Shown: positions 5,745 to 29,659 of the stretch, piece by piece | Layout: every line of letters starts with the position of its first letter | Position numbering within the stretch: the stretch's first letter is position 1 | Assembly (NCBI GenBank): GCA_002269645.1 | Contig: NIVC01003414.1 | Location: 35,110 to 99,109, forward strand | Origin: Macrostomum lignano | Taxonomy: Eukaryota | DNA: 64,000 nt | Reading direction: 5' to 3' | Program-made: the position numbers and the translations under genes | The notes under the pieces: generated by a model | What the model saw: the letters and a program-made list of their open reading frames with translations, nothing else | What the model was told of the DNA's origin: nothing | The model's database searches: none

Positions 5745-6445
5745 ACCACTTGGCACTCCAGATTCTAAATTGCCTTGGCACTCCAGATTCTAAATTCCCT
5801 TGGCACTCCAGATGCTGAATTGCCTTGGCACCCCAGATTCTAAATAGCCTTGGCACTCCATGTGCTGAATTCCCTTGGCACTCCAGTTGCTGAATTCCCT
5901 TGGCACTCCAGTTGCTGAATTCCCTTGGCACTCCAGATTCTAAATTCCCTTGGCACTCCAGATGCTGAATTGCCTTGGCACCCCAGATTCTAAATAGCCT
6001 TGGCACTCCATGTGCTGAATTCCCTTGGCACTCCAGTTGCTGAATTCCCTTGGCACTCCAGTTGCTAAATTCCCTTGGCACTCCAGTTGCTGAATTGCCT
6101 TGGCACTCCAGTTGCTGAATTCCCTTGGCACTCCATGTGCTGAATTCCCTTGGCACTCCAGTTGCTGAATTGCCTTGGCACTCCAGGTGCTGAATAACCT
6201 TGGCACTCTAGGTGCTGAATCCCTTGGCACTCCAGGTGCTGAATCCCTTGGCACTCCAGGTGCTGAATCCCTTGGCACTCTAGGTGCTGAATTGCCTTGG
6301 TACTCCAAGTGGTGCTGAATTCCCAGATTCTAAATTGCCTTGGCACTCCAGGTGCTGAATTGTCTTGGTACTCCAAGTGGTGCTGAATTCCCAGATTCTA
6401 AATTGCCTTGGCACTCCAGATGCTGAATTGATCCCTTGGCACTCC
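5745..6445. repeat. Minisatellite, 24-25-bp unit CCTTGGCACTCCAGTTGCTGAATTC with a 150-bp higher-order duplication
   Basis: Direct tandem array. The 50-aa period in the pseudo-ORF shows a 6-monomer block repeated. Confidence 0.92.
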
Positions 6446-6924
6446 AGGTTCTGAGTAGCCTTGACAGTTGTTAGGGCAGTGTACATGTACTGAAAATCAG
6501 CAAAGATAGTTTGCAAGCTACTATTGAATTAAATAAAATATTTTCCCGTTTAATGCAGGTATCTGGGATACAGATTTCAAATATATTATATTTAATGGGT
6601 GACAAGCTGATTTAACTTGTACCTGGAATGAAAAGCTAGGAAATGAAATGTTCTAGATAATACTTGATCAAAGCCTTCGGCTCCATCACAGGGTCGTCAT
6701 TTTAAATGATGGGTGAATACTAAATATCATTAGATAAAAACACTTTACAGGTCAAAAATCAAATCGTTTTGATATCTGCATTTATGGAGCACGGTAGCAA
6801 CTGCACAAATTATTACAAATATTTTTTAACTAAAAATTAGCACTGGAATAAAATTGAAATTTTGGCTTCCGCACATCGAATTAATGGATAATCAATTCTC
6901 GGGCTCGTCAAAATTGTCATTATC

Positions 6925-7770
6925 TGTGTGATATGGACGATTATATCTGTGTGTTATGAACGATTCTCAGTGTGTTATGGCCTATGGGCGATTATCTGTG
7001 TGTTATGGGCGATTATATCTGTGTGTTATGAACGATTCTCAGTGTGTTATGGCCTATGGGCGATTATCTGTGTGTTATGGGCGATTATATCTGTGTGTTA
7101 TGAACGATTCTCAGTGTGTTATGGCCTATGGGCGATTATCTGTGTGTTATGGGCGTTTATATCTGTGTGTTATGAACGATTCTGTGTGTTATGGCCTATG
7201 GGCGATTATCTGTGTGTTATGGGCGATTATATCTGTGTGTTATGAACGATTCTCAGTGTGTTATGGCCTATGGGCGATTATCTGTGTGTTATGGGCGATT
7301 ATATCTGTGTGTTATGAACGATTCTCAGTGTGTTATGGCCTATGGGCGATTATCTGTGTGTTATGGGCGATTATATCTGTGTGTTATGAACGATTCTCAG
7401 TGTGTTATGGCCTATGGGCGATTATCTGTGTGTTATGGGCGATTATATCTGTGTGTTATGAACGATTCTCAGTGTGTTATGGCCTATGGGCGATTATCTG
7501 TGTGTTATGGGCGATTATATCTGTGTGTTATGAACGATTCTGTGTGTTATGGCCTATGGGCGATTATCTGTGTGTTATGGGCGATTCTCAGTGTGTTATG
7601 GCCTATGAGCGATTCTCAGTGTGCTATGAACTATTCTCAGTGTGTTATGGCCTATGGGCGATTATCTGTGTGTTATGGGCGATTCTCAGTGTGTTATGGC
7701 CTATGAGCGATTCTCAGTGTGTTATGAACTATTCTCAGTGTGTTATGGGCGATTCTCAGTGCGTTATAGG
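6925..7770. repeat. Composite minisatellite, 72-bp higher-order unit built from three TGTGTTATG-initiated subunits
   Basis: The 24-aa periodicity of the pseudo-ORFs (VCYERFSVCYGLWAIICVLWAIIS) corresponds to 72 bp. Confidence 0.92.
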
Positions 7771-8243
7771 CACAAGTACTAGAATAACTAGATGGGTCAC
7801 TCAGCACATATGCGTGTAAGCTAATTTCAGTTCAGTAGTAAGCTAAACTGTTTTAGCAACAGAAGCTAAAACAGAAGCATTTTTAAAGCCAAGGCTCATT
7901 TATTGGATCTAACCGCCCCCTCCCCAGCTTAAAACACCCTCCAAACGCGCCTTTCCACACTACACCCGCCCCGCCCCAATTTTTATCACCTTTCTCGGAA
8001 TTCCAGCCTAAAGCTGCCATGTACATTTCAGTGGACTGGCTAAATGTACATTATGGCTGGACCAATTAGCAAGTTGTTTACGCCTGTAAGCTTTGGGCTT
8101 CTAAACTTATCAACGTCATTTCAGCTGCCTTTATTTTTATAAAATAGCTTATGTATTCTTCTTTGCTACTGCACTGAAAGTAGAAAGCTGTTTTACTAAG
8201 TATATATGCCCGAGTTGCCCATCTAGTTATTTTAGTATCTGTG
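7771..8243. mobile_element. Small non-autonomous element with CACA termini (possible CMC-type MITE) inserted at the end of the 72-bp array
   Basis: Imperfect 40-bp inverted ends CACAAGTACTAGAATAACTAGATGGG / CACAGATACTAAAATAACTAGATGGG (reverse complement). Array-like sequence resumes after 8243. The flanking dinucleotides GG and GT are only an imperfect TSD. Confidence 0.5.
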
Positions 8244-8412
8244 GTATGGGCGATTATCGGTATCTTAAAGACGATTTTTGGGGTTATGGGCAATTCTCAG
8301 TGGTTAAGGAGCAGTACGCTCGAAATTATGATTTTAATACCGCAGTGCCGCTTTGTCGAGTTCAAGGAAAAACTGATCAGGCCCGATTCAACTCTGAACT
8401 CCCAGTGGGAGA

Positions 8413-9999
8413 TCACTTGACCCGGATGCTCGGCTGCTGGTCACCGCCAGCGACAAGACGGCCGTCCACTGTTTTCTTGGTCACCCGGCCGTCCACAGTC
8501 TCAGTGACCGTCTCCACCCCGTTCTCCACCACCTTGTGCACCACCACCCGCCTGCCATCGCGCGTGTTTGTGAAGGTCTGCGTCACCCGGGTGGAGTGCA
8601 GCGGCGCGAACCGCTGACTGCCGCCTCGGCCGCTGCTGGCTGCGTTCCTAGACGACCGGCCGGCGCCGGCCGTATTGGACGACGAGGCAAAGCCGGCGCC
8701 GGTGTGCTGGTTGAAGTTGGCGAAGTTAAAGAAGTTGCTGCCGGGCCCTCCGATGTTGTTGCTGGCGCGGTGCCGGTCGCCGATGTCGCGCATCGACTCC
8801 TCTAGCGTCTGATGGGTTGGTTGGAAATTTAACCGACAATGCCAATTAAAAAATATGAAGAATATCTGCAACACTCTACTTATATAGAGTTTCTAAGTAG
8901 AAAAATGAGGATTTGTGCAGTATTTTTACGACTAACCCGATATCACGTATCACATTGTTGCTGTTCTTACCTTGAACGGGTCCGGGTTGAAAATGCGCGA
9001 GAACGGGTCGCTCGGCCCAAAAAAGTCGCGAAATACGTCGCGTGGATCGCGGAAATGATACTGATGCTGGTCGTACCAATCTCTGTCGTGGCGCGGCTGA
9101 TAGCTGCGTTGCTGGCGCTGCTGCTGGCGCTGCTGCTGCTGCTGTTGCTGACGGCGGAAGAAATCGTCTGCCTTGGTTTCACCCTCTTCAGCCGCCGCCG
9201 CCTCAGCGAGGCCTTCCTTGCCGTAGAAATCGTAGATTCGCCGCTTCTCCGGGTCGGACAGAACCTGGCAGATGTTTGGTCGGATTATTTCTTATTTCTT
9301 AAAAAATAACTCGAATGCTGGTAGAGTCGCTCGCTTGGCGAGAAGAATAAATAGAAAGCTTAATATCAACATTTGAATACGATTGCAATTTCTAACAACT
9401 TCAACGCGTTTCGCACGCCATGGTGCATCGCCAGGATTTTATTAGAACGATTTGAGAAATTGAGATTGAAAGCGATTGATTAAATATTGGTTTTTGCAAC
9501 GTACACAGGTAAGGAGGGTAAGATTGAAAACAATTGATTACTCAAATCGTTCTAATAAAATCCTGACGATGCACCATGGCGTGCGAAACGCGTTGAAGTT
9601 GTTAGAAATTGCAATCATATTCAAATGTTGATATTAAGCTTTCTATTTAAAAAATAACTGTAGTGTGCTAATTTTTCTACTGACAATAGTAGAGTCAACA
9701 AACTATTATTAGTAATATAACGTATTCTGATAAAAATTCTATCGTGTGCTAATTTTTCTACTGAGAGCAGTAGAGTCAAGCGATGATTAATACCAAAACA
9801 TGCATATATCAACGTGAATTTTCAATACCTCGTAGGCCTCGCTGATGAGTTTGAACCGGCGTTCAGCCTCATCAGGATTTGTCTGATTCTTGTCTGGGTG
9901 CCAGCGAAGTGCCATTTGCCTGTAGGCTTTGCGCACCTCAGCCTCAGAAGCGTCTGGGTTGATCTCAAGGATGGCATAGTAATTGTCTTCAGATGCCAT
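8413..9999 (-). CDS. DNAJB6: DnaJ subfamily B member 6-like co-chaperone; exons 9999-9829, 9264-8971, 8808-8413
   Basis: J-domain with HPD (ALRWHPDKN), EAYE|[25 protein letters not shown] motif, G/F-S region and C-terminal [13 protein letters not shown]. All three exons join in phase 0 at GT-AG sites. Paralog assignment (B6/B2/B8) is uncertain. Confidence 0.88.
9348..9649. mobile_element. Intronic hairpin/MITE: 109-bp inverted arms around an 84-bp spacer
   Basis: 9348-9456 is the reverse complement of 9541-9649 with about 2 mismatches. TA lies at both outer edges. Confidence 0.8.
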
Positions 10000-10449
10000 G
10001 ACTGTTGGCTGAAATAATTGTATTATTTTCAATAGAATCTGTCAGGCCCAATAATGGCTTTGTCTGCTTATAGATGACACATTTTTATACAAAAATAAAA
10101 TCTAAGCATAATGATATAACTCCATAGCTAATTGCAGTTTTAATTTAGAGAACTGATATAGGCCTATTATTCATATTTAAAGAGTATAATTATTTGATAA
10201 TACATTTGACTCTACCATAGCAGCAGGTATGGCTATAGAAAATTGCAAGAAGATATACAGTTCCTGTGTCTAATTGGGATTGGCCACTAAAAGACTATTA
10301 GAGCCTTTGATTTTATGGCTGAAGGGTAAAGCAATACAACAACAACAACAACAATAGAATACGCAGGTTAGCGTCACAGGGCGCGCTCCTGTCCCCGCCG
10401 GTAGGGTGCCTGCAGCGTCAGCAGCAGCACCTCCTGCACCGGCTCTGGG

Positions 10450-10840
10450 GGTGGCACGAGACCAGCATCCACGTCGCGCTCCTGGACACCCCGCCAATGT
10501 GGCAGGAGCTCCGTCCGTCCCTGCCATCGACGGGGTGACGAATTGGTCTCACCTCCGGGTATGCAGCCTGGAGCTGTCCCTCACCATTAGGTTGGCGGTG
10601 GGCGGCGCTTTTTACAGCGTAAGTCGGTCTGCGGAGGAGCCCTGCGCACCGGGACTCGGGTTCCCTTGCTTTCTGGCCACCCGCCGCAGGCCGCAAATTG
10701 GATTTTACCATCTACTGTCCGCCCACGCGGAGTCAGCGCCCCGACTGCATGGTGCTAGGCACCCGGTCCTATTAGCTACATCGTCTAGCTACAATGTCCG
10801 TGACCCGAAGATGAAGAAGAACGAAGAAGAATGAAGAAGA
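10450..10840 (+). mobile_element. 391-bp retroposed insert (3' end of another LINE or a SINE) nested antisense in the RTE element
   Basis: 12-bp TSD ACCGGCTCTGGG at 10438-10449 and 10841-10852. GAAGAA-rich 3' tail at 10808-10840. Removing it restores the host CPEP-VQEVLLLT reading. Confidence 0.85.
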
Positions 10841-10852
10841 ACCGGCTCTGGG

Positions 10853-12640
10853 CAGTTCGACTCGGCACGGATGATGTGGCCTGCCAGCTGGAGTCGCCGA
10901 CGGCGCAGCAGGTCGCTTGGACGGACCAGGCCGGCGCGGCGATACAAAGCCGCGTTGGTCACTCGCTTGTCGCCGATCTTGAAGGCGGCGCGCAGCAGGC
11001 CAGCGTGCGCCGCGTCAACTTGCTGCTCGAGCGACTCCGTCAGCGACTCAGCGTCCAGGTCTCGGCGTTGTACAGCAGGACGGTTTCGATCACCGCCTGG
11101 AACAACGCCGCCCTCTGGCGGTCAGGTAAGGCCTCGGACTGCAGGGCTGCCCTCACAGAACGAAAGGCAGCCCAGGCAAGCCCGCGGCGACGCCGCAAAT
11201 CCTCGCGGACACCGGGAACTAGATTGCCGAGGTAGACGAACTGCTGACAACGCGGAAGCTCTGTCGCCTGTCCATCAGTGCCTCGGCACAAAATCGCTGC
11301 CTCGATGTCGTCTGGCACGCAGAGCACGATGGTCTTCTGCGTGTTGACCACCAGGCCGACACTCGCCGCAACATCATTTAGCTTGTCCAGTTGTCGCTGG
11401 GCGCCCTCGACAGTTGAGGACAGCAAGGCGAGGTCGTCGGCGTAGCCAAGCACGCTGAGCCGCCTCTCCGGTTGACGTCGACCGACGCGTCGCCGCAACA
11501 GAAAGCCGTCATCGTTGGTAGGAAGAGCGGTCCGCAGCACCCAGTCAAGCACCAGAACGAACAGGAACGGCGCAAGCGTTTCTCCCTGAAGCACCCCGGA
11601 AAATGTCTCAAAGAAGTCCGATAGGCCGTCTGGTGTTGAAACAGCAGCTTTCGTATCACGGTACATCGCCATGATGGCGGAATTCAGCTGCTCTGGCACG
11701 TTGTACGCACGGAGCACCTTTGGGAGCACAGACCTGACGACCGAGTCGAATGCCTTCTTGAAATCTATAAAGATAACAATCAGGATCGACTGACGTATCC
11801 GTGCTTTCTCGATGACTCGCCGAAGAGCCAGGATCTGCGTCACAGTGCCGCGATGGGGCCGGAAGCCGTTCTGCTCAGGACGCAGGTACGGATCCAGCAC
11901 GGGCTGCAACCGCGATAACAGCAACCGGTTGAACAGCTACGCAGCACAGGACTGCAGACAGATGCCTTGGTGCTTCTCAAGCCTCGTGGTGCCCGGCTTC
12001 TTTGGAACTGCGACGATGTGCGCCGTGCGGCCGTGGTCCATTCGTTGGGTGCCGCCTCACTGAAAAGTACGCAGTTCATCACTCTAGCGACCCCACTGGC
12101 CACACAGTGGATGCGCAGCGCCTCGATGGGCACCTCGTCCGGACCCAGCGCTTTCCCGCCCGGTGACTGTTGGGCGAACCTCACAACGTCGGCTGTGCTG
12201 ACTGGCGCTAGGCTGAAGCTCTCCTTTGCCGGCAACGACATCTCCGGCGGCAGCGTCAGATTGTCTGGCAGCGGGGGTGGCGGCGCATTGACAACGGCGT
12301 CGAAGAACTCACGCAGCTCGTTCCTGCGCTCGTCCGCAGAGTCGCCTGCCAGGTTTAGCGGAATGCGCCGCTTTCGCCCTGTCAGAGCATTGATAGCCGA
12401 CCAGGCCACGCGGCCTCTGGTATCGGGCCCAGCAGCAGAGCCTCCTCTGCCTCGCGTGTTGGTCGCCTGCTCAAACGGTGTCTCTCCAGCTCTTCCCTCG
12501 CTTGCCAAATTGCGGGGTCGGCTCGCCATACTGGCTGCTCTCTCTAGGCTGGTCGCATTAGCAGGACTGCTTGTTCCGCGGTGGCTCAAACTGCAGTGCA
12601 TACCTCCGCGTACTAAGCACCTCCACGCTTGCCACCAAGT
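10853..12640 (-). pseudogene. Frameshifted reverse transcriptase ORF of the RTE-like element
   Basis: ORFs 11840-12601 and 11040-11924 are in different frames. The C-terminal part continues in another frame (LEQQVDAAHAGLLRAAFKIG...AGHIIRAESNCPEP) and resumes at 10449 (VQEVLLLTLQAPYRRG). Confidence 0.85.
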
Positions 12641-15425
12641 GCAGTGATAAAAGTGCTAGCAAAGTGGCTGTGCATGTTGGCGTCCCTGAACGCGCAGTAG
12701 TAGCACCATGGTGGCCACTTCGGCAGACGGTGGTAAAGCAATAGAAATGAATAAATTTTGCTAGTAGCTTTTAAGAAGGGAACTCTAAAGTCCCTAGGGT
12801 CAGGTGTTCAAGCAATACAAGTTTAGACATTCTTCTTATATATTAAGGTAATTAAATGAGACACTATTAATAAGTAATAAGTTCAATTATTGATATCTAA
12901 GTTCTAGGTTATAGCCTAGGGATATTAACTATGGATATTCATAGTACGAGCGCTCGTAGTTAGACTATTATGAGAAAAATCTAGGTACACCTATGGATTG
13001 GATATAGATTAGGTCAAAGAAAAAAAACTTGTAGTAGTGAAACCCAATGGCAGTTATGCCTTACTGAAACTTTTTATTTTATCTATTATTTCATTTTAAT
13101 ATATTTTATTAAATTACAAAATTGCAACTTATAAATTTATTTTTTCATATTAGACTTTATAGTCTATAAAATGGCAATGGAAATATAGTAAAAGCTTATG
13201 AGATACTAACAAATAATATTGAGTATTAATGCCGAATGGGATGATCACTATATATATAATATAGTATATATGTTAATGAAATTCTAGTTTAAAAATTAAA
13301 ATAGGCTTACTAGATTAGCAATAGCTTTTTCAATAATTTTAAAGTGACTGTTTGAAAATCATTCAGAAGGATAATGCAACAAACAAAAATCATACTCATA
13401 ACTTCTGCTTTAAAGCATTGCCATCAGGCTTCTAAATTTTACTTAAAAAATCAGGCCTACATCATCCATACTTAATGCATTTTCAAGTTTTCAATATAGA
13501 AAGCCTGGATTAAATATAGCTTAATTAGCAAAGTAGCTAACTACTTTGTGCTTGCTTTATGCTTTGGAGCTAGGAGGCTAGAAAATTGGTCTTTACTTTA
13601 GGTAAGGTGATGACAACTGAATAAATTGAATTTAAATAAATCAGTAGACGATTCAGATGAGATGAGGTTGGCATGTAGTGTTATACTATAAGGGTCAAAT
13701 TACTTTGATTTATCGATTCAGCATTTAGACGTTAAAGAATTTATACAGCCTTTGAAATAATTGGCACACGGATATGTAGTTGAACAACAGTTAACAAGGA
13801 TCTAAAAATTGGCATCGTCTCCTTGAATTAAAAATTCCCCATGAATATGAAAATATTAAATTCACATTTTTACCCAAAGCAAAGCAATAAATCGTAACTT
13901 TTACATGATATTTTATGGATTTACGTTGATTTTATCCCTCATATAAATGAGAACTGTGAATTTTTGTTTAAACTGCTGAAAGGCGCATGCGGGCTCACGC
14001 AATGGTCTTTTTAGAGTTCCAGTATCTGGACTTAGTCTCGGACTTTTGAGAGCGCAAAAAATATAATAAAAATGAAGGTCACTTTAGAACAAGAAGCCGA
14101 CCTCTTCCCCAGGAGTTGTGCTGGGTGAAGATGAATCGGTAGCTAAGCTATAGTGCTACATGTAACATAAAAAAATACAATTTGGCTACATAGTACACAT
14201 GTACAAGCATGTGTATAGGTTGGATTGACAGACATTGACAGTCATGGTAGATGTATCATATGTCTACTGCAAATGCGGTGCTGTACAATAGTTAGGAAAA
14301 CTTTGAAGAATTTTTTAGGCTTTGTTGGGTCAAAAATACAATTGTATGATCGACTTGGGAATTAAAAATGTGCACAATTGCATTATATACATGTACCTCA
14401 CATGTACATATGTACATGTAAATGTAGTTGACGTAAACATACAAATGCAATTGTATTTTTAAACACACGTATATTTTTCGGCACAAAATAGCAATACAAC
14501 AACAACATATATAGTCCCTAGAAGACAATTGACTTCCCTAGACTCCTATCATGGATAAATCATCCATGATCCATGCATGAGGCCATCCATGGATCATCCC
14601 TGAACATGTATGGACACATGGCTGTTCATAGATGGAACCATACATGTTTATGGATGGTTCCATAGATGTTCATACGTGGGAGTTTTCATGCATGGTCATC
14701 CATGGACATTAAAAACTAGTAAATGTATCTTACTGCACTACTTTCAGTAGCCCATGACGATTTTTTGATGCATTGCCATTGACACGTTTAGTGTGAACTT
14801 TTTATGAGTAAGAGTAACTTATTCCCACATTTCTTCCAAGCGGATTAGAAGTTTTAATTTCAGGTTGCATTTACATGTAAGACATCTTTGGAGAAAAATC
14901 AGACCTTCCTCTAAACAGCAATTTGCAACCAGGCTTGAGCTAATAAATTTCCAAAAAAATGACATTTTAAGGCAAAAATGCAGCATACATGTAAGTTGTA
15001 CAATTTCTTTTAAAACATTTAAAGTAGATTATTAAAGAACGCACACGACTGCTTTTATTTATTTTAGCATAACAAATTGAAATAAAATAGTAAGACGCTT
15101 TAAACTTTAAACTGCCTTAGTCGTGCACACGCAGGCAAAAAATACAAGAAATAAATTACAAATCAAAGCAAAAAACGAAGAGAAATAAATAGCTCTAAGG
15201 ATGTCTATAAAAGTATTTTTACATTGGAACATTCTAGTCTCTAAACTTTCAGACTTTTAAAGCCACAAAGAGGCCGTGTTCGGGACTTGAGGTTGTCTAT
15301 TTTTAATCTAATATTCAATAGAAAAATTGAAAAAGGTACAGTAAAGTACGTAGCTGCTTTTTTATTCCTATTTTCATTTTGACATCCTATTTGCTCTAAA
15401 GGGTCGACATCCTGAGTGCTTGCAC

Positions 15426-17729
15426 TTAATCATGTTCAAATGCCCGGGCTAATGGGATAGCACAATAGCAGTCTTTTTTAAACAATGGAAGCGGTACCGC
15501 TATGCAAGGACGTTCGATTTCAATTAAATCGACAGTTTTTTCAAAACACTGAGAATTATTTGGCATAGTAATTAAAACAAAATAAAAAGACGAACACTTT
15601 TTATAAACAGAATACAGTGCTTGGCGCCATTCGAGCAAATCTTCTGGACAAGGATCAGATAGAAATGTAAAGTCGAAAAGAGAGCCAATTGGGTTAAATT
15701 CTTTAACTAGAGCTCGGTTAGGCATGACAAAGCGGATAATGGAACAAATTTGGCCAGACGATAAAACACAAAGATGATTGGAAGTAGATACATTTGAATT
15801 AAAAGTTGAAAAAAAGTAGCCATTAACGTAGGCCAATGTGCTTTTTAAAATTCCATTCGACCGGGATGGTTCTAACGCAATTGAGTTATAAGCTTCTAAG
15901 ATACTCGCATCCTGAACTTCTGAAAAAAGATGATGCAGTTCCTTCTGGTATAAAAACTTGCTAACAAGTTGGGAACCAAATGAAACTGTTCCACACAAAA
16001 ACTTTTTGAACATGCCCATTGCACTCTCAAAGGCGAACATCGAGTAACCAAAAACAGGACCAAGCATACTATACTGTTCGCCCATATGTAGAAGTAAATG
16101 AAAGTTGAGGCGAAGAATCTTTGGACCAAAGATATTTTGAGCATTTAAAAGAAAGTACTTTGACAGCATCTCTATATCGACTTTGTCGGATTGGACATTA
16201 TACAGCAAATGGTACAGAAGTACTAAATTTGTTACTAAGAGCTTAGTTGGAAGATGCGACGCTCTCTGCACTAAAGTAGGAAAACAGAAATAAAGTGCAA
16301 AATTTTTATAATGCTTTGCCTTCCAGTCGGAGAGGGTTCGAACTTTTGACTGAATACTAATGCTCGGTGGTATAATCGAATCGCGAATACAAGAGGACAC
16401 AAAGTCCGAACAACTAGAAGAACAGAAATATGGCTCGTGCCGGTTTGAAGGAGAGAAAATCTCTTCGAGCAAAAACTTAATTTGGCCTTCGAATAAACAG
16501 TGTAGACTATCAATTGGGTTACAATTAGGAAAGGAAATAATGTCCAACAGGCAACTGCGACTCTTAACACCAAAAACAGGCTTTTTACGAATTTCTGCTA
16601 GACGGCAGTGCTCAATATGAGTAGTCATAGTCCGTAAAGGAAATATGTGCGCTTCGCTAAAGCGGAATACCCAGTTCTTGCCTTTCTCAGATACTTTAAT
16701 GCTTTCCCCCGGGTGCAGACATTTAGGGCAGCTAAACGCTCCATTAAATTGGTGAATACAAAATAGCTTAGCTAGCGCAGGTAAGTCGCAGACTAACAAA
16801 GTACAATGAACAAAAACATTATATTCCAAAAATACAAATTGCTTTGGTAAGCTTTTCACGATTTCGGGCAAAAAAACCTGAAAATGTGGAATAGCCTTTG
16901 CAGCGACAAGAGCAAGAAGAATGAGATTTGAGAACTTCTGTCGAATGTGCACAGGGAGATTTAATATCTGCGCTTGAAATGGCCAAAAGCTACTTTTAGC
17001 ATTGTCAAAAAAATTAGCTCCATCGGCAGAGACAAGTAGATGCAAGTGAATTGATTTATTAGAACTTCGCTGTAAATTTTGATCCGACACAATTTTTGAA
17101 TTCAGAACGTCAGAATTGCTACTGGTCTGTAATTTCTGTTCATAGTTAAGAATAGTTGTAAGATGTTTAGTCAAGATTGATCGCAGCTGTGGGACGATAT
17201 TTAGCAGTGTTACAATCGACTTTGCCTTTGGTTGATGAATATTACACTGGGCTTTGCATTCACTGCAAAAAAGAAGCTCAGAGACACAACTGTCATCAAG
17301 ACTGCAAGCTTCTTTAAGCCTGGACTTTAACACCTTTACGCTAGGTGGGATATTTTGATTAGATCTTTTAGTAAGGATCAAAATAAGCTTAAGCAGCCTA
17401 TCTAGCGCAGCTTCAGAAACTCCAGACGTAATAGCCCACTGGTAAATTAATGCAGCCTGCACACATGGATCGTCTAAAGCTGAAAAATTCGGCAGATGAC
17501 TCAATTCTTCCTCAAACTCTATATTGCCTGCATCAGGATTAGCAGGACCGGAACTACTAAAGCCCTCTGGTTGGGGTTGAGCTTCCAATACATTAGCGCT
17601 AGGAATTTGATTTAAAGAGCTGCTACTTGATGAGCTGTTGGAATGAGAATCTGAAGACAATATTTGGCAGGAGTAAGCCGAATAGTCAGTTGACAGGGAT
17701 GCTTCAGATTCAGTGGACGTGTCAGACAT
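15426..17729 (-). CDS. EnSpm/CACTA-type DDE transposase, 767 aa, intronless and uninterrupted
   Basis: CxxC at FCSEC. Motifs SADG..F...KSSFWP, VCDLPA, NGAFSCPKC, IDSLHCLFEG, KAKHYKNF and NFHLLLH...LGP...SMFAFES are characteristic of Transposase_21/DUF4218-type proteins. Confidence 0.9.
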   Translation of the reverse strand: MSDTSTESEASLSTDYSAYSCQILSSDSHSNSSSSSSSLNQIPSANVLEAQPQPEGFSSSGPANPDAGNIEFEEELSHLPNFSALDDPCVQAALIYQWAITSGVSEAALDRLLKLILILTKRSNQNIPPSVKVLKSRLKEACSLDDSCVSELLFCSECKAQCNIHQPKAKSIVTLLNIVPQLRSILTKHLTTILNYEQKLQTSSNSDVLNSKIVSDQNLQRSSNKSIHLHLLVSADGANFFDNAKSSFWPFQAQILNLPVHIRQKFSNLILLALVAAKAIPHFQVFLPEIVKSLPKQFVFLEYNVFVHCTLLVCDLPALAKLFCIHQFNGAFSCPKCLHPGESIKVSEKGKNWVFRFSEAHIFPLRTMTTHIEHCRLAEIRKKPVFGVKSRSCLLDIISFPNCNPIDSLHCLFEGQIKFLLEEIFSPSNRHEPYFCSSSCSDFVSSCIRDSIIPPSISIQSKVRTLSDWKAKHYKNFALYFCFPTLVQRASHLPTKLLVTNLVLLYHLLYNVQSDKVDIEMLSKYFLLNAQNIFGPKILRLNFHLLLHMGEQYSMLGPVFGYSMFAFESAMGMFKKFLCGTVSFGSQLVSKFLYQKELHHLFSEVQDASILEAYNSIALEPSRSNGILKSTLAYVNGYFFSTFNSNVSTSNHLCVLSSGQICSIIRFVMPNRALVKEFNPIGSLFDFTFLSDPCPEDLLEWRQALYSVYKKCSSFYFVLITMPNNSQCFEKTVDLIEIERPCIAVPLPLFKKDCYCAIPLARAFEHD

Positions 17730-17923
17730 TGTTATAAGTTATAAATTATAAATTATACATTCAACTTAAATTATTTAGATTAAAATTATGTGAATTAAAT
17801 TAAGTGATAAAATTATAAAAATTCTAAATAAATTTAAATATTAAAATTATGGATTACCTTTAAAAAAACTGACACAGGTATAAAAGTAATTTGCTACAAC
17901 AATATTGACTCTTGATAATATCG

Positions 17924-19902
17924 TCAGGATATCGAGGCTGCCGACGCCGAACGCTTCTGAGCACGCGTTTCTTCTCTAGCCAGTTGATTAAGGTGCTCTC
18001 GTACAGACTTCCAGATTTCAGTGAAGTCAAACCCAGATGTTCTGTAGCACAGGAGGATCAGACCTGGAATGTAAGATAAAGGGAAAATTTAATGTATTTT
18101 ATTGAGCATTAGGTTAAATAAAATACTAGCTTAATGCATTAATGGTTTCTTTCTAAATTATCTGAAATTAATTATTTTTATTGACTATCCATCTTCATCT
18201 GCTACAATGACATTAAACTTAGTGTTCTACTACCCTATGAAAATTTACAGTGACCAAAAGGTTATCCAAATCATTCATTTTAAAGAAATCCTAAGCTTCA
18301 AGATTAGGTAAAATAAAATATGCAAAAAAGCAAATTGGACAGTGGAAATTTACGTTGGAATTCAGCCACATGCTCTGCTGGAGCTGGTCTTCGAGCACTG
18401 CGACGACCAGAGGCTGAGTCAATAATGTGCTCCATCAAATAGCCATCACCAAATCTGAGCCTAATGTAGCGCTTGATAAATTGCTTTGGGTCATTGCACA
18501 GAATTGAGGACAGTGATGCCAAAGATCCGTCAACACATCGGAAGTCCTATAAATTAGGAATTTAGGTGTAAGGACACAATGTTAATCTACCTTGCTAAGA
18601 ATGAAAGTTACATCATCAGATTTGAAAAGAATAACCTCATCTGCATATTCCTTTATTGTTAATGTACCACTAAAGGCAGTATCCTTTTTTAGGAGCCGGC
18701 TTATTCTAGCAGTGAGACGCTTCTCAAGAGCTATCATCTCTGAGTGGATGAATTCCTTGATGCCTATAATTATTCAATAAATAATGTTTTTACTACATCT
18801 TGTACATAATAATTTCAGAAATAACAGAAATTAAAGCTAAAATTTACCTTGCATAGAGGTATCAGGTTGTGTTTCCATGGCATGGCTTTGCTCCTGATCA
18901 ACACCTTAAATCAATTGACAAAAGTATTAACTCAGTAATACTGGATAAAAGATCTCTACATCAGGATACAATTCTGTCAAAATCAATAGTGACATATTTT
19001 CTAATATAAAGGCAATTTTTTTATTTCAAAATTTTGAAATTGGATCAAAAAGAAGACAAGCATATACTAACTTGAGTTCAAATGACCTGTAGCACGTTCT
19101 TGCTCTGCCTGTACAGTGGAAGCTTCCTTTTCAAAGGCAGAAATCACTTTATCTAAAATGTATATAAATTTGTACAAAGTAGCACATTTTCTATAGAAAA
19201 AGCATTATTCATATGCTTATCATATTTAAGATACTTAGGTAAATTATCATCAGTTACCATTTGGATTTGGAACAGCGAAATATTGGGCTTCCTCATCTTC
19301 ATTATCTTCACACTCAATATTGTGATTATAAAGCTCCTGTAGCAAGTCACGGCTATTGCTGCCTTGGCATGAGCTAACTGCTGAACTTGCTAATTGTGGT
19401 TGTTGTTGTTGCCGATCTGTTGCTTTTGCAATGGTACTTTGGCTGTTACTTGCTCCTAGAAGAGCAATGGCTTGGTCAACTAATGAGTCAGTGTTTTCAG
19501 CCTCACTGACCAAAGACGACAATTCTCTCATTGCAGCAGCAATTTGCCGCTCATTTCCTTTAGCAATAAGAGTTGCAGAGTATAACCTAGCATACATACG
19601 AAGAAAGACCTTGTCACCCTAAAAAGTTAAATATATAGACATTTTTTAAATTGTTTCAAACATTAAATTATTTCAATTAGATTTAATATTAATTTTTTAA
19701 TTATAAAAATTACTTGTGCCAATTTAATCTTGTCATCATCAGTCATGTCCCTTGGCCAATATGGTGACCCAAATGCAATAGTAGTATACTTCTCATTACT
19801 TGCAGCTCCATCAAGAATAAAACAAAAAAATGTTGATGAGTAGTCTAGATTGAATCGAGAAGTTGATTTTGAAGACTTACGAAGGCTTCTTTCAATGCTC
19901 AT
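17924..19902 (-). CDS. Transposon accessory protein (392 aa) with a C-terminal BEN-like domain; exons 19902-19714, 19618-19258, 19152-19087, 18904-18848, 18763-18591, 18546-18354, 18063-17924
   Basis: All six introns are GT-AG and the phases (0,1,1,1,0,1) give one open frame of 1179 nt. The C-terminus FIKRYIRLRFGDGYLMEHIIDSASGRRSARRPAPAEHVAEFQRLILLCYRTSGFDFTEIWKSVREHLNQLAREETR follows the BEN pattern by eye. Confidence 0.78.
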
Positions 19903-20428
19903 GATTAAAAATTTGGATTGGCTAGAAAGATTGTATATATCTGTAAATGAGAAAGTAAGATATATTTAAAAATTTATAACTGTTTTAAGTAAACATAGTA
20001 CAGAAACATAAAAAATATTATATCAATCAGTTAAATATTTTCATATAATGTTTTATATTTTATTTGTGTTTTTAACATAGAATAAATAAATAGATCTAAA
20101 AAGTTTTAACTAGAACTTATTTAGTTCTAATATATAACCATTAAATCTTATTAGTCTTATCATTTTAGTTAGTTGAATATAGAAAAATAACAATGCTAGA
20201 AAATTTTAATACTAATTTTTGAACAAATGAAACAAAACAGTTCTTTAAACCATAGCCTAGAAGTCTTAAAAATACTATAGTATTACATAGCTAAGACTAG
20301 TTATAAAAGTAGGCCTAAAGGTACAAGACCAAGACTGCAACAGTAAGCCTGTTATACTTAAACAAAAAGACAGTTTTATTTGTCAAGTCTGATAATTGAA
20401 AGTACAAGTACAAGTAACAAAGCCTAGC

Positions 20429-20975
20429 CAAGGGTGGATCTAGAAGGGGGGCCAAGAAGGCCATGGCCCCCCCTTAGCCGTAGCCAAAGAAATTTTGATC
20501 ATACTTTTTTGGCCTGCTACTATGCCACAGGTTTTTTTTGTGCGCAGAGTGTGCGTATGCACCCTAAATTTTAAAATCGCACCCTTAAATTAAAAAAGTA
20601 GGTGCAGTTTAGGTGCAGTCTTATAACCATTTTTCTTTAAAGGCTTAACCATGCTTAAGCTATTTTTCATGCACTGCCTTAAAATATGAAACAAAATAAC
20701 TCTTTAAATCCTATTAAGTCATATAGGCGATATAGCCTATGGCTATAGCCTTATGTAAGATATTAAAATATACATTCCCAGTTGTCTGAAACAAGACTCA
20801 AGAGAAATTACACTCTGAGCCTTAAAATTGCACCTTGAAATTTGGCACAAGGTGCGATTTTGCACCTTGTCTCTGGCAAAAAAACCCAGTATGCCAGGTC
20901 TACTTTCCAATATGGGGTTGTAGTGCTTGGTATAGCTTGCCCCCCACCCTCAAAAATTTTCTGGATCTGCGCCTG
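20429..20975. mobile_element. hAT-like MITE nested in the CMC element
   Basis: Ends CAAGGGTGGATCTAG / CTGGATCTGCGCCTG. 8-bp TSD AGCCTAGC (20421-20428) / GGCCTAGC (20976-20983) with one mismatch. Confidence 0.7.
20528..20889. mobile_element. Second MITE nested inside the 20429-20975 MITE
   Basis: Ends CAGGTTTTTTT / AAAAAAACCCAG. TATGCCA is duplicated at 20521-20527 and 20890-20896. Internal GCACC/GGTGC repeats. Confidence 0.65.
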
Positions 20976-21634
20976 GGCCTAGCTATTATTTTTTTATACA
21001 TAATTTAGTTGATATTAGATCTATCTATTGAATTTTACTGAAATAAACTATAGATAGTCCTTTTTAAATACATGATACACTAAGAAGGCCTAATACAACT
21101 TGAATTATAATGTGAGAAAAGGTAAGATAAAATAGGCCTAAATTCATTAATGCCTTAATGGTCTAATCTTATATTACTACCAAATTACTAAAAATTGACT
21201 TTTATTATGTATTATCTACTGGTAGTTACAAATAATTATTATCTACTGCATAAAGTATACGAAACTGTAATAGTCTGTCTTAGTTTCCGACTAGCCAAAA
21301 CCTGTAAGGTAGTGACATTAAAAAAATAAAACTTCGATTTACGCTATAGAATGGTTTGAACAATATATGTATTGCAGAAAAAAACAAAAATGTTGTCTAG
21401 AAAATTTAAAAGTCAGTAAAGTACTACCTTTTGTTTTTTCTCCATTGTTTTTTTAGAAGAATAGGGTATAAAGTAGCACATAAAAATTATTTTCAAAAGA
21501 AACATATGAACGTGCTTCCATCCATGATTAAATCATGGAGCAAAAAAAATACATCCATGAAAGTTTCATGGACATGCATGAAAATGACATGGATCATGGA
21601 TCATGGATGATTTATCCATGACTGGAGTCTAGGG

Positions 21635-22490
21635 TTGTTGATTCTCAGCAGATCTTGTCTATCTTCTTGGGTTGCTGCGCAATTAAGTAACTTGCAAGAA
21701 CGTGCAAGATCTTTGCTATAATAATACTTGAGTAAACTTACCAGATCTGGGCGACTTGCTACATCGTATAAGATCTTATCTTTTATGTCCATTTGTAGCT
21801 TCGAATCGCATATTTTCTTAAATTTATTGTCCCATTTTGTCATAAAATAAAATAAGTTCAGCTAGAACACTTAGCCAAATGAATGACAAAACAATTATTT
21901 ACCTCCCATCGTAGAAGATCCTGCAAGAACCGAGCAGATTGAGAAGATCTGCAACATATGACTGTTTTATTGCTCTGCATATGTACATGTATAAATTGTT
22001 CTCGAAGTACCTCAAGATTATAAATGTGTACGTATCATGTACATAAATTTGTAATATAATAATAAGATTTTCGTGAGATTCAATTTTTTGCGTACTACAC
22101 GGACATGTACATGCAAATGCAGATTTCACCTACCAAAAAATTATTGTACATATGTAACACACGTGCAGGCACACTTTCAATTTTTGCATGTCATGTATAT
22201 AGTTATGAGCGATCTTATCTGATCTGAGTATGAGTCTTGAGTCTGATCTGTTAATTGTTTTTTTAACAGGCTGGGTTTTTTAACAAACCTGCAACGGATG
22301 CAGTCAGCTGGTAAAATCTCTATACAGCTGTGCATCACAATTTTACCAGACACACAAATTACACAGTAAAATGCTCGACTTAACGTTGATCTTGTAAAAT
22401 AATGAAATAAAAATTGCTTATCTTTACCATGTGAGCACTTGATAAATGCCAAAAAATGCAGAGGTCGTCTCTACTTTCCTTAGTTGCCAT
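21635..22490 (-). pseudogene. Possible degenerate spliced gene of unknown function, interrupted near its 3' end by the CMC element
   Basis: Open segments 22177-22452 (Cys-rich), about 21900-21970 and 21637-21860, with plausible splice sites. Joining across the TT TSD reads DLLRINKSIVF-stop. No recognisable family. Confidence 0.3.
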
Positions 22491-22754: not shown

Positions 22755-22913
22755 ATGTCGAAGTTAACTATTTTGTATCTGGCTGCAGCAGCACTGTTCT
22801 TCATAGCTGGCTGTACTGCTGAACAATACCGTAAGGCATCTATTTGACAGGCAATTTGCCTGTTTTGATTCCTTGTGTTGTCTGTCTGACTGTCTTAGTG
22901 TCTGTCTGTGCGT

Positions 22914-22948
<35 letters not shown>

Positions 22949-23019
22949 ACAGTCTGCCTGCCTGTCTGTCTGTCTTAGTGTCCATCTGTCTGTCTGTCTC
23001 TGTCTGTCCGTCTGTCTGC

Positions 23020-23066
<47 letters not shown>

Positions 23067-23250
23067 TCCTTAGTGTCCATCTGTCTGTCTGTCTCTGTCT
23101 GTCTGCCTGTCTGTCCGTCTGTCTGTCTGTCTGTCTGACAGTCTGCCTGCCGGTCTGTCTGTCTTAGTGTCCATCTGTCTGTCTGTCTCTGTCTGTCCGT
23201 CTGTCTGCTCTGTCTGCTTGCCTGTCTGTCTGTCTTAGTGTCCATCTGTC

Positions 23251-23289
<39 letters not shown>

Positions 23290-24027
23290 GCCTGCCTGTC
23301 TGTCTGTCTGTCTGCTTGACAGTCTGCCTGCCTGCCTGTCTGTCTGTCTTAGTGTCCGTCTGTCTGTCTGTCTGCCTGTCTGTCTGTCTGTCTGTATGTA
23401 TGTCTGTCTGTCTGTCTGTCTGTCTTTCAACTGAACTGGGGTTATTTTTTCCATTCTCCTATCGATCGCAGGGCCGAAGTACTCCTACATTGGTTGCTAT
23501 GGCGACACCAGCCGGCGGGACCTCTCCAACTACGTGGCCCGCAGCCGCATGTCGGTAGAGTTCTGCTACAGGGAGTGCGACAGGCTCCGCTACCGGTACT
23601 TCGGGCTGCAGAACGGGCGCCTGTGCTTCTGCGGCAACACCTACGGGTTGTACGGACAGAAGAGCGAACGGGAGTGCAACCTGCGCTGCAACGGCAACCG
23701 GGACGAGTTCTGCGGCGGCCGGCTGCGCAACTGCATCTACGAAATCCACACGGTGAGCGAAGCTGCAGTTTTCACTAATTGGCAAAGCACATATGTACAA
23801 ATGTACATGTACCTGCACAGTTTGTAATTGAGAGGTCTCAGAAGGTGAGATAAATATTACAAGTACATTTGCATACAGTCGACCATGAAACAAACAATTT
23901 TCATGCGCAGATTGTTCTACTGATGAAACTTCTTAAAGCAGTATAGTGTGTTTATGTTGCTGAATTTAAAACAAATTATTATAGTGTTTTTAATTTTCAC
24001 TTTCAGAGCGGCAGCTGGCGGAAGTAG
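22755..24027 (+). CDS. Small secreted single-WSC-domain protein, 125 aa; exons 22755-22830, 23472-23752, 24007-24027
   Basis: Signal peptide [25 protein letters not shown] pattern YIGCYGD...[10 protein letters not shown]...[14 protein letters not shown]...[19 protein letters not shown] junctions in phases 1 and 0. Confidence 0.88.
22880..23425. repeat. (TCTG)n-based microsatellite filling WSC intron 1
   Basis: Directly visible, with interspersed CTTAGTGTCC units. Confidence 0.95.
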
Positions 24028-24409
24028 CGACGCAGACAGACGGACAGGAAGACAGACGGACAGGCAGACAGACGGACAGGCAGACAGACGGACAGGCAGA
24101 CGGACAGGCAGACGGACGCTATAAAACGATATTTATGCACGCGCTTGTGCAATAGGGAGATTAGATAAAAAACTTTCTGTTGGCAATTGTTGAAGACAAT
24201 TTGTTTTTGTAATAAGATAAACGAAGCAATGCATCTAGCATTACAGTAGTCATCATATCATTTTACTGCGCAAGTAATGAATACCTATATTATAGTAATA
24301 ATAAGATATACTGTATATAGCGCATATATCCAGATGTGCCGGCTCGTCACAGTGAAATATACACCTGAGAAAATTAATTAACAACCTTTGAATCGGGAGT
24401 TTAAGGACA

Positions 24410-27226
24410 CCATTCAATCCAATTGCCGGACCACATTCAATCCAATTGCCTGACCACATTCAATCCAATTGCCTGACCACATTCAATCCAATTGCCTGAC
24501 CACATTCAATCCAATTGCCTGACCACATTCAATCCAATTGCCTGACCACATTCAATCCAATTGCCTGACCACATTCAATCCAATTGCCTGACCACATTCA
24601 ATCCAATTGCCTGACCACATTCAATCCAATTGCCTGACCACATTCAATCCAATTGTCTGACCACATTCAATCCAATTGCCTGACCACATTCAATCCAATT
24701 GTCTGACCACATTCAATCCAATTGCCTGACCACATTCAATCCAATTGCCTGACCACATTCAATCCAATTGCCTGACCACATTCAATCCAATTGCCTGACC
24801 ACATTCAATCCAATTGCCTAACCCCATCCAACCCAATTGCTTGACCCCATCCAATCCAATTGCCTGACCCCATCCAATCCAATTGCCTGACCCCATCGAG
24901 CCAAATTGCCTGACCCCATCCAGCCAAATTGCCTGACCCCATCCAATCCAATTGCCTGACCCCATCCAGCCAAATTGCCTGACCCCATCCAGCCAAATTG
25001 CCTGACCCCATCCAACCCAATTGCCTGACCCCATCTAATCCAATTGCCTGACCACATTCAATCCAATTGCCTGACCCCATCCAACCCAATTGCCTGACCC
25101 CATCCAACCTAATTGCCTGACCACATTCAATCCAATTGCCTGACCCCATCCAACCCAATTGCTTGACCCCATCCAATCCAATTGCCTGACCCCATCCAAT
25201 CCAATTGCCTGACCCCATCGAGCCAAATTGCCTGACCCCATCCAGCCAAATTGCCTGACCCCATCCAACCCAATTGCCTGACCCCATCTAATCCAATTGC
25301 CTGACCACATTCAATCCAATTGCCTGACCCCATCCAACCCAATTGCCTGACCCCATCCAATCCAATTGCCTGACCCCATCCAACCCAATTGCTTGACCCC
25401 ATCCAATCCAATTGCCTGACCCCATCCAATCCAATTGCCTGACCCCATCGAGCCAAATTGCCTGACCCCATCCAGCCAAATTGCCTGACCCCATCCAATC
25501 CAATTGCCTGACCCCATCCAGCCAAATTGCCTGACCCCATCCAGCCAAATTGCCTGACCCCATCCAACCCAATTGCCTGACCCCATCTAATCCAATTGCC
25601 TGACCACATTCAATCCAATTGCCTGACCCCATCCAACCCAATTGCCTGACCCCATCCAATCCAATTGCCTGACCCCATCCAACCCAATTGCCTGACCCCA
25701 TCCAGCCGAATTGCCTGACCCCATCCAGCCAAATTGCCTGACCCCATCCAACCCAATTGCCTGACCCCATCCAATCCAATTGCCTGACCCCATCCAGCCA
25801 AATTGCCTGACCCCATCCAATCCAATTGCCTGACCCCATCCAATCCAATTGCCTGACCCCATCCAATCCAATTGCCTGACCACATCCAATCCAATTGTCT
25901 GACCACATTCAATCCAATTGCCTGACCACATCCAATCCAATTGCCTGACCCCATCCAATCCAATTGCCTGACCCCATCCAACCCAATTGCCTGACCCCAT
26001 CCAATCCAATTGCCTGACCCCATCCAATCCAATTGCCTGACCCCATCGAGCCAAATTGCCTGACCCCATCCAACCCAATTGCCTGACCCCATCTAATCCA
26101 ATTGCCTGACCACATTCAATCCAATTGCCTGACCCCATCCAATCCAATTGCCTGACCCCATCCAATCCAATTGCCTGACCACATTCAATCCAATTGCCTG
26201 ACCACATTCAATCCAATTGCCTGACCACATTCAATCCAATTGCCTGACCACATTCAATCCAATTGCCTGACCCCATCCAGCCAAATTGCCTGACCCCATC
26301 CAACCCAATTGCCTGACCCCATCCAATCCAATTGCCTGACCACATTCAATCCAATTGCCTGACCCCATCGAGCCAAATTGCCTGACCCCATCCAACCCAA
26401 TTGCCTGACCCCATCCAATCCAATTGCCTGACCACATTCAATCCAATTGCCTGACCCCATCCAACCCAATTGCCTGACCCCATCCAATCCAATTGCCTGA
26501 CCCCATCAAACCCAATTGCCTGACCACATTCAATCCAATTGCCTGACCACATCCAATCCAATTGCCTGACCCCATCCAATCCAATTGCCTGACCCCATCC
26601 AACCCAATTGCTTGACCCCATCCAACCCAATTGCCTGACCCATCCAATCCAATTGCCTGACCCCATCCAACCCAATTGCCTGACCCCATCCAATCCAATT
26701 GCCTGACCACATTCAATCCAATTGCCTGACCCCATCCAACCCAATTGCCTGACCCCATCCAATCCAATTGCCTGACCCCATCAAACCCAATTGCCTGACC
26801 ACATTCAATCCAATTGCCTGACCACATCCAATCCAATTGCCTGACCCCATCCAATCCAATTGCCTGACCCCATCCAACCCAATTGCTTGACCCCATCCAA
26901 CCCAATTGCCTGACCCATCCAATCCAATTGCCTGACCCCATCCAACCCAATTGCCTGACCACATTCAATCCAATTGCCTGACCCCATCCAACCCAATTGC
27001 CTGACCCCATCCAATCCAATTGCCTGACCCCATCAAACCCAATTGCCTGACCACATTCAATCCAATTGCCTGACCACATCCAATCCAATTGCCTGACCCC
27101 ATCCAATCCAATTGCCTGACCCCATCCAACCCAATTGCTTGACCCCATCCAACCCAATTGCCTGACCCATCCAATCCAATTGCCTGACCCAATCCAACCC
27201 AATTGCCTGACCCCATCCAATCCAAT
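24410..27226. repeat. 2.8-kb minisatellite, 23-bp unit CCAATTGCCTGACC(A/C)CAT(T/C)CAA(T/C), about 120 copies with higher-order blocks
   Basis: Direct tandem array. Homogeneous 5' domain, then variant blocks. Confidence 0.97.
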
Positions 27227-27425
27227 TTTCAGACTCAAGCGTATCCTCATTCCCTAACTCATTTATTTATTAGAGGTAGAAGAGGCAGGGCCGTTGTGTG
27301 CACCTTGGCGCACTTTAAGCGACATAGGCACACAACCGGCGAGAGGCATTACTGCCCATTCCGCAGACTCCCCTGAGTAGGCTCACAAGCGCAAGCGCAA
27401 GTGCAAGGAGTGGACAGCGGCCCTA

Positions 27426-29097: not shown

Positions 29098-29106
29098 GCG
29101 TGTGAG

Positions 29107-29568: not shown

Positions 29569-29659
29569 CAAGTTTGAGCGGCGCGTCGGTAGCGTTCATT
29601 CTTTAAGGCGCAATAGCTCCGCTTATACTACTTACTTAGTAGAGTGCACAGTGTTCTAC

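Follow-up and report, generated by a model that had tools for sequence, protein, structure and literature searches.

Two two-component systems, En/Spm and PIF/Harbinger, are the classical examples of how a transposase finds the ends of its element. In maize En/Spm, TnpA binds subterminal repeats and serves TnpD, and in PIF/Harbinger a DDE transposase acts together with a Myb/SANT-like DNA-binding protein. Mirage elements have, to our knowledge, been described as encoding a transposase only, and we know of no animal element of the CMC superfamily for which a separate conserved accessory protein has been described. Here, a 64,000-nucleotide stretch of contig NIVC01003414.1 of the flatworm Macrostomum lignano (hereafter the window) was analyzed. 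It contains a 7,099-bp transposon of the Mirage group that carries, upstream of an intronless transposase gene and on the same strand, a predicted seven-exon accessory gene. On balance, we favour the reading that this is an autonomous, recently active two-gene transposon in which a BEN-like accessory protein serves as the partner that recognizes the element ends.

The element and its place in the CMC superfamily

The element is delimited by terminal inverted repeats (TIRs) and a target site duplication (TSD), and its transposase is encoded by a single open reading frame (ORF):

14534..14535, no strand: left copy of the TSD, TT, read directly
14536..21634, minus strand (both genes): whole transposon, 7,099 bp, delimited by the TIR pair and by the ends of the alignment with a second copy
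14536..14575, plus strand: TIR of the transposase-side end, CCCTAGACTCCTATCATGGATAAATCATCCATGATCCATG, found as an inverted-repeat match
15426..17729, minus strand: intronless transposase gene, 767 amino acids (aa), an uninterrupted ORF
21595..21634, minus strand: TIR of the end next to the accessory gene, matching the other arm at 38/40 positions
21635..21636, no strand: right copy of the TSD, TT, read directly

The 40-nt TIRs follow the consensus CCCTAGACTCC(T/A)(A/G)TCATGGATAAATCATCCATGATCCATG, with two mismatches between the arms, and 0 matches of this kind are expected by chance (100 shuffles). A second copy of the same family (family A) was found at another locus, on contig NIVC01000758.1 (L010), with unrelated flanks and the TSD TC. 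It is 99.8% identical to the copy in the window (7 mismatches and 6 gap openings in 6,783 bp), and the aligned region spans 21634 to 14536, stopping exactly at the predicted ends. Between the two copies, the accessory coding sequence differs by 2 nt. Because the copies are nearly identical and the second one sits at another locus with its own TSD, the element must, judging from the sequences, have transposed in the recent past. A first, sequence-only reading of this DNA had drawn the element at 14536-21634 with a TT TSD and an uninterrupted 767-aa transposase, and had suggested that it may still be mobile. The coordinates proved exact to the base, the duplication and the ORF were found as described, and recent mobility is backed by the second copy.

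Two sister families, B and C, were recovered via the transposase, their transposases being about 62-63% identical to that of the window. Family B (L001-L008) comprises seven full-length copies and the truncated L004, with a mutual identity of 99.7-99.9% and the TIR CCCTACTCTC, and family C is represented by L009 (element at 6132-13388). Families A and C have 5'-CCCTAG..CTAGGG-3' termini, and those of family B begin with CCCTAC. Matching 2-bp TSDs were found at 10/10 insertions of the three families, namely TT in the window, TC at the second family-A copy, and TG, TA, TA, TC, TA, GA, TG and CA in families B and C. With paired dinucleotides at all ten insertions, chance is excluded.

The window transposase is identical to P0016 and differs by one residue from M. 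lignano BOX15_Mlig024626g3. In Pfam, it matches DUF1258 (PF06869) with an E-value of 8.9e-15 and 55.3 bits (cutoff 33.1), and the sister copies score above this cutoff too. Transposase_21 (tnp2) was matched under its cutoff (E=2.8e-4; 20.6 bits, cutoff 28.6), DUF4218 was likewise below threshold (5.7e-3), and DUF1280 gave no Pfam match. DUF1258 corresponds to the Mirage group, which clusters with the En/Spm family Transposase_21, and DUF1280 is the Pfam family of Chapaev (PMC3985635). Among ten homologues of 19-63% identity, D236, D315, C334-x2-C337, H544-x3-H548, and E568 of the transposase are invariant; the C(2)C and H(3)H motifs are hallmarks of CMC transposases (PMC12730594). The 2-bp TSD falls within the short range of the superfamily (2-5 bp). 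The CA..TG termini usual for CMC elements are not present, the ends being CCCTAG or CCCTAC; these termini are described as occurring "in most cases" and are thus usual rather than universal (PMC12730594). With DUF1258 above threshold, the invariant CMC residues, and the 2-bp TSD, the element is therefore assigned to the Mirage group of the CMC superfamily. It falls outside En/Spm proper, because it lacks CACTA termini and its TSD has 2 bp rather than 3 bp, and outside Chapaev, because it has neither the 3-4-bp TSD nor the invariable CAC..GTG termini of that group (PMC4079192). Accordingly, of the earlier label CMC/EnSpm the first half stands, on the invariant residues and the TSD, while the second half does not, in view of DUF1258, the CCC..GGG termini and the 2-bp TSD.

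With the Mirage group, first described in Caenorhabditis elegans, the element shares DUF1258 and has a 2-bp TSD, but it differs by its second conserved multi-exon gene and by its CCC..GGG termini in place of the CA..TG usual in the clade (PMC12730594). With En/Spm (CACTA) it has in common the superfamily, two proteins encoded on one strand, short motifs in both orientations within the subterminal ~200 bp of both ends, and the division of labour proposed here. In contrast to En/Spm, its accessory protein has no sequence relation to TnpA and matches no Pfam family at a meaningful score, its termini are not CACTA, its TSD has 2 bp instead of 3 bp, and Transposase_21 stays below threshold; moreover, its transposase gene is intronless and lies downstream of the accessory gene, not inside an intron of it. 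Chapaev elements share the superfamily and the occurrence in animals, whereas their 3-4-bp TSD, CAC..GTG termini and DUF1280 are absent here.

The accessory gene and its conservation

The accessory gene is located 194 bp upstream of the transposase gene on the same strand. Its exons are:

19714..19902, minus strand: exon 1, with the ATG at 19902 and a phase-0 end; families B and C have a homologous exon
19258..19618, minus strand: exon 2, which with exon 1 encodes an N-terminal ~100-aa alpha/beta domain and then a low-complexity linker
19072..19152, minus strand: exon 3, 81 nt in all three families
18848..18904, minus strand: exon 4, 57 nt, phase 1 to 1, the least certain exon; counterparts of 72 nt (family B) and 54 nt (family C)
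18636..18763, minus strand: exon 5, a long helix and possible coiled coil; alternative donors at 18609/18608 and 18591/18590
18354..18546, minus strand: exon 6, which encodes the BEN-like domain's first half with the SGRRSARRPAP loop; its aa sequence is 77-81% identical to those of families B and C
17924..18063, minus strand: exon 7, the final helix of the BEN-like domain, in which W..V...LNQ..R is invariant among six sequences, and the TGA stop

All six introns have GT-AG borders and compatible phases, and from 19902 the seven exons form one open frame on the minus strand. The sequence-only reading had proposed such an upstream gene, which a list of ORFs shows only as fragments, and the same exon structure was obtained here. 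The length of 392 aa given for its product was not recovered exactly: three exon-5 donors, all in phase 0, yield 382 aa (GAG/GTTATT, 18636), 391 aa (GAT/GTAACT, 18609) or 397 aa (AAG/GTAGAT, 18591), and the donor conserved in the sister families is GAG/GT, corresponding to 382 aa. The accessory gene is thus a predicted seven-exon gene with a product of 382-397 aa.

The gene is uncalled at all ten M. lignano loci. The only trace found in the databases is P0010 (UniRef100_A0A1I8G9A9), a 78-aa protein named "Transposase", which is a mis-spliced fragment of the family-C accessory gene where exon 5 is joined to the middle of exon 6 and the frame reads on into intron 6. Standard annotation therefore misses the accessory gene.

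In families B and C, tblastn located the accessory exons in unchanged order upstream of the transposase gene, giving models of 400 and 364 aa in which the six introns are GT-AG and conserved in position and phase. The pairwise aa identity of the accessory proteins among the families is ~60%, similar to that of the transposases (~63%). The ratio of nonsynonymous to synonymous substitutions (dN/dS) is 0.14-0.19 among the three families, with saturated synonymous sites, and dN alone is ~0.33, close to the ~0.28 of the transposase. When the DNA of the families is compared, alignable stretches are limited to the termini, accessory exons 1-3 and 5-7, and the transposase gene. Introns and spacers show no alignment, and tblastx revealed no additional conserved coding segment between the families. 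Both genes lie inside 14536-21634, and families B and C as well as the second family-A copy have kept the two together. On this sequence comparison, the accessory gene has diverged together with the transposase under purifying selection and is a core part of the element.

A captured host gene, absent from other copies of the family, had been considered in the sequence-only reading as well; instead, both sister families and the second family-A copy possess the gene. An origin by capture from the host or by chance assembly of ORF fragments, with no role for the element, would agree with the gene being unannotated at the ten loci and with the word-indexed protein searches, which gave no homologue and nothing new with either the single accessory protein or the alignment. 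Such an origin is nevertheless extremely improbable in view of the exon-by-exon conservation with identical intron positions in three families, the dN/dS of 0.14-0.19 at saturated synonymous sites, and the full-length homologues that adjoin related transposases elsewhere. Both capture and chance were rejected on the conservation across families, and we regard the accessory gene as real, because it is conserved with its intron positions in the sister families and is under purifying selection.

Relatives were searched by exhaustive HMMER over 1.84 billion representatives. Besides some fragments, three full-length distant relatives were found (P0011, P0013 and P0015; 20-26% identity, intronless, 364-437 aa). 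Distant homologues adjoin related transposases in three other lineages from environmental or unidentified samples (metagenomes and read archives). P0015 is encoded on two independent contigs (L017 and L018), 2 kb downstream of an 855-aa transposase that is 29% identical to that of the window and, with DUF1258, Plavaka and DUF4218 matches, belongs to the same clade. On L011-13, the N- and C-terminal domains of the accessory protein are recognizable downstream of a 32%-identical transposase, and P0011 (L020/L021) starts 10 bp after an ORF matching the last 130 columns of the transposase profile (hhalign probability 91.7%, E=7.6e-7). The gene order in the distant lineages is transposase first, the reverse of that in M. 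lignano. Judging from these loci, the pair of accessory and transposase genes has been kept together across deep divergence. Among the inverted repeats reported for contig L017, there were no TIRs enclosing both genes.

Two further observations concern distant contigs. Near one end of L017, inverted arrays of a ~16-bp unit, CCCATTAGATCGAAA, are present at 19-200 and 516-652, which could be the subterminal zone of that element or of a neighbour. P0012 and P0017 (ENA, Logan contigs) contain a 133-136-aa ORF that is a homologue of accessory exon 6 and reads past the position of the exon-6 donor (EMKR vs EFQR), which suggests the same exon-6 intron position in another species.

The two frames could also form one transcription unit, from which alternative splicing or bicistronic processing would yield a BEN-transposase fusion or two products. 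En/Spm makes tnpA and tnpD as two products of one pre-mRNA, and M. lignano uses spliced-leader trans-splicing and operons. The shared strand, the 194-bp gap, the lack of a canonical AATAAA between the frames, and the 10-bp distance of the ORFs on L020/L021 would fit such a unit. On the other hand, the position of the exon-7 stop codon is conserved in three families, the transposase ORF has its own ATG in all homologues, and the reversed order in the distant lineages means that an N-terminal BEN fusion is not conserved. We consider a single unit very unlikely.

The BEN-like domain and its proposed role at the ends

The accessory protein is predicted to consist of an N-terminal ~100-aa alpha/beta domain, a variable acidic and Q-rich linker, a long helix, and a C-terminal BEN-like domain. 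In the AlphaFold model the N-terminal domain forms a block at residues 21-120 with a predicted local distance difference test (pLDDT) of 65-88, and the helix upstream of the C-terminal domain spans residues 226-256. No relatives of the N-terminal domain were found in Pfam or among PDB sequences. Structure comparison gave it a single lead, a weak resemblance to Tudor domains (KDM4A, rank 4, probability 0.63), and it was not assigned to a family.

The sequence-only reading had recognized a BEN pattern in the last part of the protein. Structure and profile ranking point the same way, Pfam does not: PF10523 gave no hit at E<=10 for the window protein, the isolated C-terminal domain or six homologues, whereas the BEN domain of BEND6, used as positive control in the same library, scored 4.3e-16. 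Pfam searches with the full protein, its C-terminal 165 and 102 aa and the six homologues gave no DUF4806 and only sub-threshold noise (Peptidase_C7, NEW1_HB). A phmmer search of the single accessory sequence against PDB gave nothing, and a full-length profile of six sequences matched only a designed coiled coil.

The C-terminal domain was modelled by AlphaFold2 from an alignment of six sequences (pLDDT 76.8, predicted template modelling score 0.70). The model has helices at 36-48, 52-55, 73-90, and 94-125 with a long loop at 56-72, the first of the five helices not being clearly formed. When it was compared with 350,542 PDB chains by Foldseek, ranks 1-10 were all BEN domains (BANP, BEND6, Insv and BEND3) with template modelling (TM) scores of 0.43-0.65 and probabilities up to 0.97. 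The NACC1 BEN domain followed at ranks 16 and 19, and non-BEN structures, with TM scores of 0.1-0.3, appeared from rank 11. With the full-length model, BEND6 and BANP ranked first as well. Among predicted viral structures no match was significant, and a bracovirus BEN protein came only at rank 10. Independently of structure, an eight-sequence profile of the C-terminal domain was run against 177,635 distinct PDB sequences and had the BEND6 BEN domain as best hit (E=0.024, 76 columns co-linear); for scale, BEND6 against the bona fide Insv BEN domain gives E=0.01. By hhalign, the domain matched BEND6, or BEND6 plus Insv, with 66-71% probability.

The invariant residues of the family are located in the middle loop (S322 and R324) and in the last helix (W354, V357, L361, N362, Q363, and R366), which we take to be the DNA-contacting elements in BEN-DNA structures. 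The model agrees with the published description of the BEN fold, i.e., a globular domain of helices that has a loop in the middle and its last helix at the centre and that retrieves BEN domains in a reverse PDB search (PMC10789644). BEN domains (Insv, BEND6, BANP, BEND3 and NACC1) are the best structural and profile match, with their helices, long middle loop and long last helix. The accessory domain differs from them in lying below PF10523 detection and in being encoded by a mobile element, not by the gene of a host transcription factor, and the protein in addition carries an N-terminal domain without relatives in Pfam or PDB sequences.

The C-terminus could alternatively be a small helical bundle that resembles BEN domains without being homologous to them and that, for instance, bridges transposase subunits or host factors. 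The negative Pfam result, Foldseek E-values that are all above 0.1, an hhalign probability of just 66-71%, and the lack of a significant match among predicted viral structures would be expected of such a bundle. It is hard to reconcile with the ten best PDB structural matches being BEN domains of four different proteins, with a sequence-only profile that also ranks BEN first and aligns over the whole domain, and with the fact that recognized BEN domains are no more alike mutually. While no single number is significant alone, the independent structural and sequence rankings agree, and we therefore find it likely that the C-terminal ~90 aa form a divergent BEN-like domain and rather unlikely that they are an unrelated bundle.

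BEN is a sequence-specific DNA-binding domain (PMC11601247), and both ends of the element are crowded with short motifs:

14536..14710, no strand: subterminal zone with CATGGA/TCCATG motifs including the palindrome ATCCATGGAT, by motif count
21520..21634, no strand: subterminal zone with CATGGA/TCCATG motifs, by motif count

CATGGA/TCCATG occurs 15 times in the terminal 2x260 bp, where 0.35 copies are expected, and twice in the ~6.5-kb interior. The 10-bp palindrome ATCCATGGAT occurs twice among the end motifs. Families B and C carry the same class of motifs (ATCCATG, TCATGGA and ATGCATG) at high density in their ends. Neither Pfam, fragments included, nor hhalign detected a DNA-binding domain in the transposase.

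By analogy with the known two-component systems, we propose that the BEN-like domain binds the CATGGA/TCCATG motifs, including ATCCATGGAT, which crowd ~150-200 bp inside each end. The protein, perhaps dimeric through the helix preceding the domain, would in this way mark and pair the ends and recruit the DDE transposase. It would thus play the part that TnpA has beside TnpD in En/Spm, or that the Myb-like protein has in PIF/Harbinger. With PIF/Harbinger the element would share a separate DNA-binding partner, here a putative one, that is encoded beside the transposase and co-evolves with it, as in the Nuwa lineage (PMC12730594); the transposase superfamilies are unrelated and the partner has a Myb fold there and a BEN-like fold here.

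Alternatively, the accessory protein could be a BEN-type repressor or anti-silencing factor that, bound at the ends or the promoter, tunes transcription or limits copy number, with the transposase recognizing the ends itself. The characterized BEN proteins known to us (Insv, BEND3, BEND5/6 and BANP) are all transcriptional regulators, the accessory gene has the motif-rich end at 21520-21634 upstream of it, in promoter position, and conservation and purifying selection fit a regulator equally well. Yet motif density is just as high at the other end of the element, which lies downstream of the transposase gene and where no promoter is expected, and Pfam and hhalign detected no DNA-binding domain with which the transposase could recognize the ends. 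Furthermore, the linkage of the two genes in very distant lineages and in both gene orders is what would be expected of an essential partner. We consider a purely regulatory role unlikely; as TnpA of En/Spm is both regulator and cofactor, the two readings are also compatible.

Several points weigh against a two-gene transposon with a BEN-like end-recognition partner, in addition to the negative PF10523 result. Individual Foldseek E-values are weak (0.26-1.3), and the models were built on alignments of 6-7 sequences. Exon 4 shows neither DNA nor tblastx conservation among the families, skipping it keeps the frame, and the choice among the three candidate exon-5 donors is uncertain. For the distant loci, co-mobility is deduced from adjacency only. 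The CATGGA motif could instead be the transposase's own site. Finally, the 767-aa transposase of the second family-A copy (P0001, UniRef100_A0A1I8IQY4) is named "DUF4806 domain-containing protein" by UniRef, and if the transposase had a BEN-type domain of its own, the proposed division of labour would be wrong. No DUF4806 or BEN domain was found in it by Pfam, whole or in fragments, and hhalign against BEN profiles was negative.

Neither a BEN-type accessory gene in a transposon nor an animal CMC element with its own conserved accessory protein was found described in the open literature searched, although a prior description is possible in Repbase or in the primary DUF4806 paper. What appears to be new is a two-gene DNA transposon whose accessory protein probably has a fold new to that role. 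This claim is tempered by the DUF4806 leads, i.e., the UniRef name of the transposase, the classification of DUF4806 as a BEN subtype, attributed to Pan et al. 2023 in PMC11075544 and PMC10789644, and the expansion of DUF4806 in Hydra alongside transposon domains (PMC7642931). If the BEN-like domain does bind the CATGGA repeats, it would represent a new DNA-binding fold among transposon accessory proteins and a candidate mobile origin for BEN-domain transcription factors, in an apparently active two-gene element that is directly testable in a transgenic-friendly flatworm. It is also conceivable, if doubtful, that a deep Mirage-like CMC clade, found in flatworms and at least three other lineages, uses a BEN-type end-binding partner and has been the source or vehicle of the patchy spread of BEN/DUF4806 among animal transcription factors and large DNA viruses. 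The THAP, BED and CGGBP1 domains, which derive from transposases, would then be a parallel.

Other features of the copies and the window

The window was also considered as the locus of contig NIVC01000758.1, which was rejected, as that contig carries a different copy and its neighbouring DUF4476 gene is outside the window. This second family-A copy contains a nested 5.9-kb insertion (L010:523-6415) in its 5' non-coding part, corresponding to ~21302-21316 of the window. The insertion has 18-nt TIRs, TAGGGACTTCAGTGAGAT, an apparent 7-bp duplication, CTTACAG, and ORFs of 438, 221, 210, 184, and 169 aa.

In family B, a ~73-bp tandem repeat is located between the transposase stop and the 3' end (L001:12631-13106 and equivalents in L002-L008). 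Its copy number differs among copies that are 99.7-99.9% identical, so the length of the element varies by copy. Five family-B copies have accessory coding sequences that are the same or vary by 1 aa, that of L007 is frameshifted, and that of L004 is truncated upstream of exon 4; family B is therefore a mixture of intact and decaying copies.

At the insertion site in the window, the inverted-repeat match runs 12 nt past the TIRs into the flanks (14524-14535 and 21635-21646; 7/12 complementary), which may reflect a weakly palindromic target site or chance. An 80-aa ORF on the minus strand (21601-21843) extends from the right flank through the TSD and reaches the TIR. Without the element, this ORF would gain 10 codons in the left flank before a stop, and the insertion may therefore be close to the 3' end of a host or repeat ORF that lacks annotation.

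Elsewhere in the window, two inverted arrays of a 12-bp unit lie ~850 bp apart at 46252-46471 and 47328-47686, composed of TTATTCCGCACG (18 copies) and its reverse complement GTGCGGAATAAC (30 copies), and look like the subterminal zones of a further transposon, small or non-autonomous. At 27587-27827 and 27848-28155, a 16-bp unit, TTCACAAGGTCGAAA, and its complement (period 62/127) are arranged as adjoining inverted arrays, which together make up a large palindromic structure. The window is unusually rich in minisatellites with units of 15-72 bp (405-7767, 22879-30922, 33680-34429, 38032-42525, and 52069-53434), for example 123 copies of a 23-bp unit at 24406-27227, and these account for the strong GC-skew blocks in its composition profile.

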